Assembly: GCA_002104905.1 (NCBI GenBank)
Contig: MCFE01000816.1
Span: 1-33,643, forward strand
Source of the DNA: Basidiobolus meristosporus CBS 931.73
Lineage: Eukaryota; Fungi; Basidiobolomycota
Reading direction: 5' to 3'
DNA: 33,643 nucleotides
In this document: positions 27,082 through 33,458 of the stretch, one piece after another
How positions within the stretch are numbered: position 1 is the stretch's first letter
How the letters are laid out: each line of letters starts with the position of its first letter
Made by a program: the position numbers and the translations under genes
The notes under the pieces: generated by a model
The model's database searches: none
What the model was told of the DNA's origin: nothing
Seen by the model: the letters and a program-made list of their open reading frames with translations, nothing else

Positions 27082-27589
27082 TTAGGGTTAGGGGGGAGAT
27101 AGTCACCAAAAGGTTAAATCTTTATTTCAGTTGAAACAAAGAAGCCAGTGCTACTATTGTAGCTTTGATACAAGAGTGTGTAGCTGAGGGGAATTTGTAG
27201 GTAAGTTTACAAGAAGTGATGATAGTTCTTCAGTGCTCAAGACACTGTTCAGGGGGAAGGGGGGTAGCAAGAGGGGTAAGAATGATTTGTGAACAACATT
27301 AATGAGGGGAATGTGATAAGGATTGATATTCATCATAAAGGGAGTGTGCTGCTGCAGATATTGCTGCCAAAGGTCTGTCAAGTACTTCAGGTAGGCCAGC
27401 TTGGGTTTTTCTGACTGCAGAATAAATTCAGCAAACTTCTTGACTTCAGGATCTCCAAGAATAGTTCTCCAGCAGGAGCCAGGTGTTGTGTGGTGTGTTC
27501 TCTTCCAGGCCTTAATCAGTGGGTTGTTGCAGTTGTAAAGTCTGAGGTATAATCTGGTTCTAAGGTAGAGAAGTCTGATCTTATAGGGC
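27082..27589 (-). mobile_element. Severely 5'-truncated copy of telomeric non-LTR retrotransposon family A (3' ~500 bp)
   Basis: Near-identical to 30362-30868. Starts after cttagggttag with the shared terminal motif and encodes the ORF2 C-terminus (ORF track 27154-27612). Confidence 0.9.
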
Positions 27590-28125
27590 TTAGGGGGGAG
27601 GAAAGTCACCAAGTGGTGAAATCTTTATTTACTTATGACAAGTATCTAAAGAAGCCATGTTAATCTGAAGTAATTCCTAGAAAGCTAGGTCTGAGAGATA
27701 TCTTCCTGGTAAGCCAGGTCTGAGAGTTGAGAAGCTGAGTGGTACTATATTTCCTAGTTAGCTAGGTCTGAGAGAGGTTTCCTGGAAAGCCAGGCCTGAG
27801 AAGTGAGAATCTGAATATATCTGAGCTAAGTTATACTGGTTTGCGGTAGCTGAATTGTGGCCAGAATAGCCAGTAGACTGGGGGAGCTGAGATGAATATC
27901 TGGGCGATCACTGGCCAAATTTACTAGGCAAATCTGGCCAATTAGCATTTCAAGGATTTCAGCCAATCAAAGCCTTTACTTTGCCCAATGGTTGATCAAG
28001 CCATCTCCCAATGAGCACACATCAATTTTGTTAATCAAATTTTTGCTGGATCCAGGATTTGAACCTACAACCATGGGTATGGAAGGGTTAGGGATAACCA
28101 CAAGGCTAAGTGTTCTTGGTTCAAC
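27590..28125 (-). mobile_element. Non-coding telomeric retroelement copy 1, candidate tRNA-derived SINE
   Basis: Near-identical to 32897-33425 and carries the shared 3' motif. Minus-strand A-box-like TAGCCTTGTGGTTA at 28108-28095 and B-box GGTTCAAATCC at 28065-28055. No long ORF. Confidence 0.75.
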
Positions 28126-28225
28126 TTAGGGTTAGGGGGATGATCATCACCAAAGGGTGAAATCTTTATTTAAATAATAAATAAAGAAGCCAAGTTTGCA
28201 TATGAATATCTGAGATGCAGGAAGC

Positions 28226-30361: not shown

Positions 30362-32896
30362 GGTAGGGGGGGAGACAGTCACCAACAGGTGAAATCTTTA
30401 TTTCAGTTGAAACAAAGAAGCCAGCGCTACTGTTGTAGCCTTGATACAAGAGTGTGTAGCTGAGGGGAATTTGTAGGTAAGTTAATAAGAAGTGATGATA
30501 GTTCCTCAGTGCTCAAGACACTGTTCAGTGGGAAGGGGGGTAGCAAGAGAGGTAAGAATGACTTGTGAACAACATTAATAAGGGGAATGTGATAAGGATT
30601 GATATTCATCATAAAGGGAGTGTGCTGCTGCAGATATTGCTGCCAAAGGTCTGTCAAGTACTTCAGGTAGGCCAGCTTGGGTTTTTCTGACTGCAGAATA
30701 TAGTGAGCAAACTTCTTGACTTCAGGATCTCCAAGTATAGTTCTCCAGCAGGAGCCAGGTGTTGTGTGGTGTGTTCTCTTCCAGGCCTTAATCAGTGGGT
30801 TGTTGCAGTTGTGAAGTCTGAGGTATAATCTGGTTCTAAGGTAGAGAAGTCTGATCTTATAGGGCATAAACCCAAAAGCACCAAGAATAGCATGTCTGTA
30901 GGGGCATTCAGGCAAATGAGGCACCAAGGAGGTAATGCACCATACTGCAAACTTGTCAAGCTTAGTGCAGTCTCTAGAAGTAAGAGAGAGAAGTGGTAAG
31001 CCAAATTCCAGGACAGGGAAGACAAACTGCTTGAGTAGAAGGAGGCAGCTGGGAGCTGAAGTTGTAGGAGGAGTAACAGCCAACAGCTTGTGGAGTGCCT
31101 GTCTTGCAAGGATAATTCTCTTCTTCAGGTGTGCTCCAGAGTCTAGTCCAGTAGGAAGGAAAGGAAAGCCAAGATATGTAGCAGAAACCTGAGCAGGTAG
31201 AGTGGAGTTCTCCAGGTTGATGGGAGAGCCCAAAGGTACTGTCTTTGCAATGGAAAGCTGGAGATTATTCTTCTGCAGATACTGGTGGATGGTCTGGGAG
31301 TCTTGTTGCACATTGGAGGAGGATATTCTGATGTCATCAGCAAAGAGAGTAACCAGGCAGTCAGCTGAGAGTCTTGGGAAGTCATTCAGGAAGATGGCAA
31401 ACAGTATAGGACCAAGCACAGAGCCTTGAACCACTCCATTAGGAACTGAGAACACAGCTGATTGCTCACTTGGGTGCAGAATTCTTGCTTGTGGATCCAG
31501 AAACAGAGACCTGACAAGGAGGGTGAGAGAGGTACTGGAGAAGCATTGCAACTTGGACCAAAGCAGATTTCAGTCAACTGAATCAAAGGCCTTAGTTATA
31601 TCAAACAGAACAGAGGGATACTTGCACTGGAGAGAGTGATCTTGGCTAAGTATGACTGCATATTCCAAGGAGAGGCCAGGAACAAAGCCAAACTGTGCAG
31701 GATGAAACTTGAGGGAGTCAGAGTAGAGCTCCTGAGCAAGCAGAAGCTCAAACACCTTTCTGCAGGTGGGCAGCAGAGATATTGGCCTGTAGGAGCTAGG
31801 ATCCAGGTGCTTTCCTTTACCCTTGTACAGTGGCAGAACATTTGCAAAGGACCATTCCTCAGGAGTAGAAAGCTGGGCTGAGCATTGCTGAAACAGTGGA
31901 AGCAGAAGTGCAGACATGGCCTTGGTACTAGTCTTCAGAAGCTCATAAGAGATTGTGTCCACACCTGGAGCTGTAGAGTTGGGAAGCCTCTTGAGCACAT
32001 TATGGATTCTCCTTTGATCAAGTGCAAGTGGGATGGGCAGAGTCTTGAAGTCAGGATGAAAGCCAGGAGTTGAGTACTGCTTTGTAGAGAAGAAGATGTT
32101 AGCCAGCTGTTCTGTTGAAGGTAACTTCCTGGAAGAGGGCCTCATTGCCCTGTAGAGTCTTGATACTGTTCTTGTTATAGAGTTGGAAGATTGCAGAGGC
32201 AAAGAACTCATAATATGATCCCAGAGCTGAGTATGCAGAGTGTGGTGAATTGCCTTGAAGTGGTGTATTGCTGTCAGGAGGAGTTTCTATGTTTTTGGGT
32301 TAGGGAAACTCAGGTAGCTTTGTTGCAGGGCTGAAACAATTGATTCCCATTTTCTTGAGGTAACAGCAGTAGTCTTGCATGGCAGTGAGAGGGAGGCAGA
32401 CACCAGAATCAGATGCTTCACAAAGAGCCAGGCATAGTTGAGATCATCTGGCAGAGAAAGTAGCAAACTGGCAAGCTTCAAGTAGTTCCCAAAGTCTTTC
32501 TTCTGATTCTTGGTAGCTTTGTGGGTGAGCACAGTAAGTTTTGGCAGCTTCTTCTTCACAACTGGTTGCATAGAAAGGGACCAGGCTGGGTGGTCAGAGG
32601 CTCTCAAGGATCCTAGCTCAGCTCCAGAGAATTGCTTGACTTCATTCACAAAGTAGAGGGCAGCAGCAGAAGGGCAGATCCAGTCAACACATCTTTTCTC
32701 AGATTGAGCACCCAGTGCTAGCAGATGGCTTTCTCTCAGGAAGTTCAGTAGGAATGTGGACCTTGGCTTCATTCTTGCAGTCAGAGTAGTCTTGTTCTCA
32801 GGATGGGGAATGTTGAGATCTCCAAGCAAGATAACAGGTGTTGATATAGATTGCTGGTATTGCTGAAATTTCTGGCATATAACTTGCACTTCCTGA
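30362..32896 (-). mobile_element. Long 5'-truncated copy of telomeric APE-RT non-LTR retrotransposon, family A
   Basis: APE C-terminal motifs (VILLGDLN, VDWI, SDH) and RT motifs (APGVDTI, SYRPISLL, QFGF, DITKAFDSV, GVVQGSVLGP, LFADD, YLG). Flanked by telomeric junctions at ~30362 and 32897. Confidence 0.93.
30427..32889 (-). pseudogene. ORF2 (APE endonuclease + reverse transcriptase) in one frame, with two in-frame stops and the N-terminus truncated
   Basis: ORF-track segments 32287-32889, 31570-32211 and 30427-31551 share one frame. Stops are TAG at 32287-32289 and TGA at 31570-31572, the latter at the usual Arg position of AFDSVD(R). No RNase H or C-terminal CCHC motif is visible. Confidence 0.9.
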
Positions 32897-33425
32897 AGGG
32901 TTAGGGTTAGGGGGGAGGAAAGTCACCAAGTGGTGAAATCTTTATTTACTTATGACAAGTATCTAAAGAAGCCAAGTTAATCTGAAGTTATTCCTAGAAA
33001 GCTAGGTCTGAGAGATATCTTCCTGGTAAGCCAGGTCTGAGAGTTGAGAAGCTGAGTGGTACTATATTTCCTAGTTAGCTAGGTCTGAGAGTGGTTTCCT
33101 GGAAAGCCAGGCCTGAGAAGTGAGAATCTGAATATATCTGAGCTAAGTTATACTGGTTTGCGGTAGCTGAATTGTGGCCGGAATAGCCAGTAGACTGGGG
33201 GAACTGAGATGTATTTCTGGGCGATCACTGGCCAAATTTACTAGGCAAATCTGGCCAAGTAGCATTTCAAGGATTTCAGCCAATCAGAGCCTTTACTTTG
33301 CCCGATGGTTGATCAAGCCATCTCCCAATGAGCACACATCAATTTATTAATCAAATTTTGCTGGATCCAGGATTTGAACCCACAACCATGGGTATGGAAG
33401 GGTTAGGGATAACCACAAGGCTAAG
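32897..33425 (-). mobile_element. Non-coding telomeric retroelement copy 2, candidate tRNA-derived SINE
   Basis: Near-identical to copy 1. B-box at 33380-33370 and A-box-like at 33423-33410; lacks the outermost ~15 nt present in copy 1. Confidence 0.75.
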
Positions 33426-33458
33426 GGTTAGGGGGGAGACAGTCACCTTAGGGGGGGG
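33426..33458 (-). mobile_element. Aborted 17-nt retroelement terminus (GGGGGGAGACAGTCACC) plus a TTAG8 variant repeat
   Basis: Matches the family A terminus at 30366-30383 (gggggagacagtcacc) and stops exactly at the hairpin loop. Confidence 0.8.

Follow-up and report, generated by a model that had tools for sequence, protein, structure and literature searches.

LINE families, a SINE and an ORF1-only unit with a common telomere-like 3' tail at chromosome ends of the fungus Basidiobolus meristosporus

The chromosome ends of Basidiobolus meristosporus CBS 931.73, an early-diverging fungus, carry stacks of retroelements whose 3' ends mimic the telomere in place of poly(A). Here, we have analyzed one such stack, located at positions 27082-33458 of a window of 33,643 nucleotides (nt) (assembly GCA_002104905.1, MCFE01000816.1:1-33,643, forward strand), and compared its components with the whole genome. 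In this stack, minus-strand units lie head to tail beneath a (TTAGGG)n telomere with their 5' ends outward. They comprise members of two families (A and B) of long interspersed nuclear elements (LINEs), two copies of a short interspersed nuclear element (SINE), one unit that encodes only the first LINE open reading frame (ORF1-only unit), one stub and one piece of a foreign sequence, unit D. We consider it moderately probable that these units make up a system of LINEs specialised for telomeres, together with non-autonomous partners of two kinds, and that new copies are added mainly onto ends with almost no repeats left, as a form of end healing that often follows erosion into the outermost unit. 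The evidence consists of the anatomy of the units, their distribution and polarity, their conservation in other species and the selection acting on the ORF1-only gene; the proposed route by which the RNAs are recognized, primed and copied is built on these sequence comparisons.

A shared 3' tail module

All tailed units (A, B, SINE and ORF1-only) share a 3' module of ~55 nt that closes with a C-run and 0-2 telomeric repeats; unit D does not have this module. Read as DNA in unit sense, the module consists of GGCTTCTTT, a variable spacer, AAATAAAGATTTCACC, a loop of 4-6 nt, GGTGA, another 6-8 nt, a C-run and the telomeric repeat; in the RNA, the order is GGCTTCTTT, spacer, AAUAAAGAUUUCACC, loop, GGUGA, 6-8 nt, C-run and UAACCC. 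On the plus strand, a unit therefore begins with a G-run followed by 6-8 variable nt, TCACC, the loop and GGTGAAATCTTTATTT. Reading of the sequence revealed no A-run or poly(A) on any tailed unit in the window. In all families and species examined, an invariant AAUAAA precedes the C-run by ~30-40 nt; it may be the polyadenylation signal by which the 3' end of the RNA is placed immediately beyond the C-run and telomeric repeat. In the tail hairpin, T-A of one stem pair is replaced by A-T in other species.

The core of the tail had 1655 exact matches in the genome (89.5 Mb in 1366 contigs) and none in a reversed control; 1521 of these matches shared one strand, and on each contig they were concentrated toward a single end in one orientation. 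As a side observation, the distribution of the 1655 copies over very many contig ends points to a very large number of chromosomes.

The earlier note, made from the window alone, had placed one or two telomeric repeats between neighbouring units. Telomeric stretches of 2-12 nt were indeed found between the units of the window, except that the junction of the B and A units (30363-30372) contains only TA and a C-run, with no full telomeric repeat. Across 116 junctions, the telomeric stretch that follows the C-run was 0-23 nt long, mostly 1-9 nt, and the C-run itself was 3-11 nt long. Where contigs reach the terminal telomere, its tract measured about 94, 185, 185 and 208 bp.

Genome-wide distribution and other species

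The four unit classes recognized in the earlier note were searched for over the genome, where they proved to be telomere-restricted, of one polarity, free of poly(A) and alike in carrying the shared tail. Initial searches gave 813 candidates for family A, 477 for family B, at least 423 for the SINE, at least 208 for the ORF1-only unit and 169 for unit D; these are first-look figures, and scoring covered the 40 best candidates of each family. All 41 scored ORF1-only copies lay 0.2-15 kb from the contig end faced by their 5' end (contigs of 12-261 kb). With a single exception, described below, family A copies on contigs of known size had their 5' end directed to a contig end 0.3-10 kb away, and family B copies followed the same pattern of strand and position (4-9 kb from the end on the three contigs checked). 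Two contigs, C790 (196,824 bp) and C479 (~312 kb), have arrays at both ends in mirrored polarity; because telomere-associated units occupy both of their ends, they may be complete small chromosomes.

The 5' truncation points of family A are scattered from 2 to 4538 of 4570 positions. Copies overall are 98-99% alike with intact open reading frames (ORFs). Within the window, the best match to other copies was 99.4% for the distal A unit and 99.0% for the distal SINE, and 97.4% and 97.7% for the proximal A unit and proximal SINE, respectively.

The exception is on contig C781 (G000:C781:50000-59999, locus L040, 6352-9810), where a 5'-truncated A copy joined directly to a SINE is inserted in a copia-like pol gene. 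This pair lies ~10 kb from one contig end in the opposite orientation, with ...TTCCTAA at its left junction and CCCCCCTAA followed by ATTTG at its right junction, and is the only internal copy that was seen. Such a direct joint raises the question of whether several units could be laid down in one event, with the reverse transcriptase (RT) jumping end to end onto the next tailed RNA. Junctions with often only 1-9 telomeric nt and the runs of very short tail fragments at locus L039 would also agree with this idea, which we nevertheless consider very unlikely as an account of the stacks: neighbouring units of the window differ in age (96-97% versus 98-99% identity to other copies), which fits separate events.

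Contigs from other samples contain related LINEs (48-80% identity in ORF2) that end in the same tail and telomeric repeat, and in one of these contigs an ORF1-only unit directly follows the LINE tail and repeat. A gene for the telomerase subunit TERT is present in B. meristosporus: two exons matched Telomerase_RBD above the Pfam cut-off and the T-motif could be identified. This agrees with the view of the earlier note that the fungus still makes telomerase-type repeats.

LINE families

The long family A copy in the window (30363-32900, minus strand) gave a Pfam match to RVT_1 and a weak one to Exo_endo_phos. It retains the C-terminal half of an apurinic/apyrimidinic endonuclease-like (APE) domain, the RT and the C-terminal region, as judged by Pfam and by comparison with other copies, and is dead, since it is truncated at its 5' end within the APE domain and carries two nonsense substitutions (32289 and 31572). 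A full-length copy was found at another contig end (L036:991-5560, minus strand), where the element is ~4.6 kb long. Its layout is a 150-nt leader with an embedded CCCTAACCCTAA ((CCCTAA)2), a 75-nt 5' untranslated region (UTR), ORF1, an in-frame TGA and ORF2, with ORF1 and ORF2 each unbroken. ORF1 (~500 aa) has a zinc-ribbon-like motif, a coiled coil and a C-terminal domain resembling an RNA-recognition motif (RRM); ORF2 (~920 aa) matched RVT_1 with E = 2.6e-25, and the best match of its RT among solved structures was the RT of human L1 ORF2p (E = 6e-13). Family B has the same layout, and the sole B copy read is broken within the APE region. In both families, ORF1 and ORF2 are in the same frame and are parted by one TGA followed by CTA (L036:3795-3830 for A; L031:7000-7030 for B); at locus L101, two called genes are likewise adjacent and in frame. 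ORF2 may thus be made as an ORF1-ORF2 fusion by readthrough of the stop codon.

Alignment with APE-bearing homologues showed that the APE domain of family A (L036:3085-3804) contains the N, YxPP, GDxN, D and SDH motifs. In A, in B and in the relatives found in other samples, Asp (LIDV) takes the place of the catalytic Glu in the QE/ET motif, and the other catalytic motifs are all retained. Exo_endo_phos_2 of Pfam matched family A ORF2 with E = 3e-4, below the curated cut-off, and the APE domain alone had no match among PDB sequences at E <= 10. Neither RNase H nor a CCHC/zinc knuckle following the RT was found in family A ORF2 by Pfam and ORF reading. As in other LINEs, 5'-truncated copies with a common 3' end were observed and long terminal repeats were absent. 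Outside Basidiobolus-like sequences, ORF2 had at most 35% identity over part of its length, essentially the RT region, and no clade label for the RT could be obtained from homologue names, Pfam architectures or the ESM Atlas. On the basis of the APE motifs and the LINE-type RT, we classify the RT element as an APE-type LINE that belongs neither to the elements with a restriction-like endonuclease (REL) nor to the Penelope type, as the earlier note had already supposed. Its proposal of one RT for the whole stack proved too narrow: there are at least three LINE families at the ends, for two of which, A and B, the RT was found, the third (family C) being a tail variant known from its tail only.

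The ORF1-only unit

The ORF1-only unit of the window (28138-29166, minus strand) consists of a 5' region, an intact ORF of 266 aa (28226-29026) and an 88-nt 3' UTR that includes the shared tail. It had been called a Gag-only unit in the earlier note. A separate, telomere-restricted unit with one such gene was indeed found, although its product does not resemble a Gag of the retroviral type. The protein is 29% identical to the C-terminal domain of A ORF1 (E = 4e-17) and 25% identical to B ORF1, with a coiled-coil arrangement that matches both. In an AlphaFold model (mean pLDDT 71), a long N-terminal helix is followed by a disordered linker, a beta-alpha-beta-beta-alpha-beta domain and a helical end. 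No match to this fold was found in PDB by Foldseek at E <= 0.001; with VIA-align, the folded domain reached Z scores of 5.6-7.2 against many RRM domains, which reflects a common fold and provides no specific link to L1 ORF1p. Because it combines a coiled coil with an RRM-like fold, the protein is predicted to be ORF1p-like and not a retroviral-type Gag; the zinc knuckle that a HeT-A-like Gag would have was looked for with Pfam and was absent, and the unit has no poly(A).

Copies of the ORF1-only unit form two subfamilies, which are 98-99% and 93% identical to the window copy, and in all of them the ORF is directly followed by the tail. The ORF is intact in 28 of the 31 copies. Between the subfamilies (for which majority-rule sequences served only for substitution counts), dN/dS was 0.16, and all amino-acid changes but one were in the linker, outside the folded domain. 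Upstream of the gene there are variable arrays of 5' monomers, from none to at least nine, of ~96-103 nt each and ending in telomere-like CCCTAAC(CC). In the window, 1.3 extra monomers (29167-29306, minus strand), namely one full monomer of ~95 nt and a partial one of 27 nt, are each followed by GGGTTAGGG; further arrays were located at G000:C514:119764-120683, G000:C1058:40215-41368 and L100:1-210. These monomers, like the (CCCTAA)2 in the leader of family A, could have a promoter function or could buffer the 5' end.

A homologue of 269 aa with 61% identity is present in B. ranarum, on a contig where 5' monomers of ~103 nt split by CTAACCC, the ORF, a tail with the same hairpin, a C-run and TAACC are followed by unique DNA with a peptidase gene. 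Since full-length A and B elements encode their own ORF1, the unit is a diverged ORF1-only lineage in its own right and not the missing gag of the LINEs. The possibility that it arose from A or B by a recent deletion was rejected in view of the identity of only 25-29% and of the same build in B. ranarum.

The SINE

The SINE is a non-coding unit of 513-530 nt (~525 nt) with the same tail module as the LINEs. Boxes of the Pol III type, namely a box A-like motif (10 of 11 positions) and a box B-like motif, GGTTCAAATCC, occur at tRNA-like spacing in its first 70 nt. No tRNA head was detected by ARAGORN with default settings and at thresholds of 70-90%, or in Rfam at E <= 5. Half of the SINE 5' ends start at one defined position.

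Proposed mechanism of addition

Because the SINE and the ORF1-only unit encode no RT, they would have to be copied in trans. We infer that the LINE RT binds the tail module on its own RNA as well as on the partner RNAs. The 3' end of the G-strand (...TTAGGG-3') would then pair with the C-run/UAACCC end of the RNA and prime cDNA synthesis, so that in each copy the 3' end would face the centromere and the 5' end would face outward; telomerase would afterwards re-cap the new end. Such additions would take place where hardly any repeats remain, be it an eroded end or the base of the tract. The APE would be used at occasional internal sites that resemble the telomere, or to nick the base of the tract. 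It is because internal tracts do not exceed 23 nt, as opposed to terminal tracts of ~90-210 bp, that we propose addition to ends stripped of nearly all their repeats.

The same elements could also be pure parasites for which the telomere is a safe site. In a route like that of TRAS, the APE would nick the G-strand of duplex TTAGGG and target-primed reverse transcription would follow. The APE motifs kept in A, B and relatives of other species, the internal insertion at the TTAGG-like site of C781 and an orientation equal to that of Bombyx TRAS1 are all in line with this explanation. Random nicking within tracts of ~90-210 bp, however, should leave long internal tracts, and none of the 116 junctions has one. 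The proximal neighbours are cut at arbitrary points, leaving on their side no sequence that could direct nicking to the tract's base, and all members have Asp in place of the catalytic Glu of the APE. We therefore place priming from the end ahead of the nicking route, mainly for the lack of long internal tracts, and hold the latter to be a possible, if somewhat doubtful, account.

Several observations nevertheless weigh against addition to nearly bare ends as the principal route. The conservation of the APE across families and species with nearly all of its motifs is an argument that nicking is important and that priming at ends alone may not be the principal route, and the C781 insertion at TTCCTAA needs a nick or a chance break. 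The short internal tracts could also have arisen by later deletion. Microhomology at 5' junctions is modest once full-length SINE starts are set aside; an apparent class of 4-nt microhomology was discarded, as it is just the AACC with which full-length SINEs start, and the remainder is weak. In addition, contig ends count as chromosome ends only where repeats were seen, and older internal copies could escape a scoring of the 40 best candidates per family.

Organization of the stack and unit D

The seven minus-strand units listed in the earlier note, with their 5' ends toward the telomere, were all recovered. The terminal (TTAGGG)n tract (33459-33643, plus strand; 32 dimer matches versus none expected by chance) runs off the end of the window. 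Directly under it, reading of the sequence revealed TTAGGG with five extra G (33448-33458, minus strand), which probably stems from an aborted copy that comprised only the tail's C-run, and the stub (33434-33447, minus strand), which corresponds to the final 14-17 nt of a tail of family A and extends to the 3' arm of its hairpin; both look like abortive starts. The distal SINE with the shared tail (32913-33425, minus strand) is ~12 nt short at its 5' end relative to the common start, has at most 99.0% identity to other copies and is preceded by TTAGGGTTAGGG (32901-32912), as read from the sequence. The 5' end of the long A copy beneath it, ...GAAGGG, overlaps the telomeric repeat. The adjoining 3' fragment of a family B LINE (29705-30362, minus strand), identified by comparison with B copies, contains the end of ORF2 and a tail that terminates in CCCCCTAAG. 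Centromere-ward of the unit D piece and the ORF1-only unit with its monomers lies the full-length proximal SINE with the shared tail (27596-28125, minus strand), flanked by TTAGGGTTAGGG (28126-28137) and TTAGGG (27590-27595). The oldest unit is a 3' fragment of family A (27094-27589, minus strand), which is 96.4% identical to the distal A copy, and the innermost telomeric dimer (27082-27093, plus strand) marks the boundary with ordinary DNA.

Although the tail was found on all tailed units, which agrees with the earlier description of four classes with one 3' terminus and no poly(A), that description had overlooked the 5' monomers and a fifth class without the tail, unit D. The unit D piece of the window (29304-29704, minus strand) is the proximal end of this unit, cut at its 5' side to 401 bp, and comparison with five other places showed that it continues upstream into one and the same longer sequence, which excluded it as the 5' end of the Gag unit or as a second SINE. 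Outward, unit D extends for ~240 nt more, then into 155-bp tandem repeats and, after a further ~3.5 kb, a gene of the SNF2 family read toward the chromosome end. The complete unit is ~10 kb and bears a helicase (for example, at L099, G000:C45:5700-12500); its SNF2-family gene occurs in at least 29 copies that are 96-98% alike and near contig ends. Its proximal join has 0-3 telomeric repeats. In the window, unit D was cut to 401 bp before the family B unit was added onto its end.

Unit D recalls the Y' elements of yeast. The stacks as a whole might have been built and spread, like Y', mainly by recombination between ends, with break-induced replication or unequal exchange acting through the short telomeric tracts and retrotransposition being rare or extinct. 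The tandem arrangement of tail-less unit D in the same polarity (two copies 10.2 kb apart in G000:C80) and the locally duplicated SINE fragments with identical junctions at locus L003 point in this direction. Yet all three of the window junctions that were tested are unique in the genome. Scattered 5' truncation points, close similarity among copies with intact ORFs, the purifying selection on the ORF1-only gene and distal units that are younger than proximal ones also speak against it, and we regard such an origin of the stacks as highly improbable. Separate retrotransposition events, as opposed to the copying of whole arrays, are proposed on account of the scattered A 5' ends, as opposed to the one start position of half of the SINEs, the younger distal units and the unique junctions.

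The composition of the stack also sets it apart from the rest of the window. The plus strand has a G-over-C skew of +0.21 to +0.31 across 27082-33458 that is not observed in the remainder of the window, and the sense strand of the retroelements is rich in C and poor in G. The ratio of observed to expected CpG is 0.025-0.05 in the retroelement units, 0.18 in the unit D piece and 0.73 elsewhere in the window. As the copies are 98-99% alike and have intact ORFs, we consider low CpG to be a trait of active lineages and not a sign of decay.

Just proximal to the innermost junction is a dispersed repeat of ~70 nt (27012-27081). Its candidates number 1794 over both strands and frequently form inverted pairs with a spacing of 330-530 bp, an arrangement that points to the terminal repeat of a miniature inverted-repeat transposable element; the stack begins at or very near the outer end of this repeat. 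Ordinary fungal genes are found 4-17 kb from the stack, including a P450-reductase fusion (19681-23421, plus strand), an aspartyl protease (10154-11269, minus strand) and an arrestin-domain protein (24693-25754, plus strand).

Comparison with known systems

Telomere-dedicated retrotransposons are known mainly from flies without telomerase, from the silkworm and, as REL-type elements, from a few fungi. Here, a full division of labour among RT-encoding LINEs, an ORF1-only partner and a SINE is observed at the ends of a fungus that keeps telomerase. The earlier note knew of no description of this combination, and our literature search found no paper on a telomeric retroelement system of Basidiobolus. 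The system offers a natural setting in which the coexistence of retroelement addition with telomerase, the choice of templates by an RT through a short tail and the stepwise origin of fly-type telomeres could be studied, and the hundreds of arrays in this one genome provide many independent junctions for analysis.

Among fungal elements, MoTeR, FoTeR and Cnl1 belong to a CRE-type clade with a single ORF and a C-terminal REL endonuclease (CCHC and PD-(D/E)XK) (2025 paper, PMC12857005). They resemble the Basidiobolus elements in their fungal hosts, their restriction to telomeres, their arrays joined to telomeric repeats and the tandem repeats near their 5' ends, whereas the Basidiobolus LINEs have an N-terminal APE and a separate ORF1, and no REL was found in them.

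With regard to features, not phylogeny, TRAS1 and SART1 are similar in being LINEs with APE and RT that target the telomeric repeat of a telomerase-bearing host in a fixed orientation. TRAS and SART of Bombyx are poly(A)-ended APE-type elements of the R1 clade that insert within long repeat tracts, and to our knowledge no SINE or ORF1-only partner of theirs has been described. The endonuclease-deficient Penelope-like elements Athena and Coprina, together with endonuclease-independent L1 at dysfunctional telomeres, are comparable in that 3' telomeric repeats may pair with the G overhang and that addition is to exposed ends; unlike Athena and Coprina, the Basidiobolus RT is of the LINE type with an APE and not of the Penelope type, its nearest solved structure being human L1 ORF2p. 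Stringent pairs of LINEs and SINEs, as well as ORF1-only LINE derivatives such as HAL1 of mammals, also have non-autonomous RNAs that bear the LINE 3' module, and an ORF1-only lineage that persists by itself. The known pairs are dispersed, whereas the partnership in Basidiobolus is confined to chromosome ends and its tail ends in the telomeric repeat.

A functional parallel concerns HeT-A, TART and TAHRE of Drosophila, which are poly(A)-ended, encode a zinc-knuckle Gag and live in a host without telomerase; we know of no SINE partner for them. Both systems form terminal head-to-tail arrays with outward, eroded 5' ends, in which an RT element is accompanied by an abundant ORF1-only partner that uses the RT in trans. 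The ORF1-only unit of Basidiobolus has only the first ORF, 5' and 3' ends of its own, a telomere-restricted distribution and a gene under selection, and by analogy would work like HeT-A without being a member of that family. On the other hand, Basidiobolus differs in a tail made of a C-run and telomeric repeat, an RRM-like ORF1, the presence of TERT and a TTAGGG cap. It is conceivable, though we consider it rather unlikely, that the consortium is more than a parasite and forms a working second layer of telomere maintenance. A LINE ribonucleoprotein with LINE, SINE or ORF1-only RNA would then prime directly on any of the very many ends that had lost its TTAGGG tract and rebuild it, with telomerase re-capping the end and the ORF1-only element, which is conserved between Basidiobolus species and under purifying selection, acting as a HeT-A-like targeting or chaperone partner. 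If this were true, Basidiobolus would have arrived by convergence at a counterpart of the Drosophila system that coexists with telomerase and includes the first telomere-specialised SINE.

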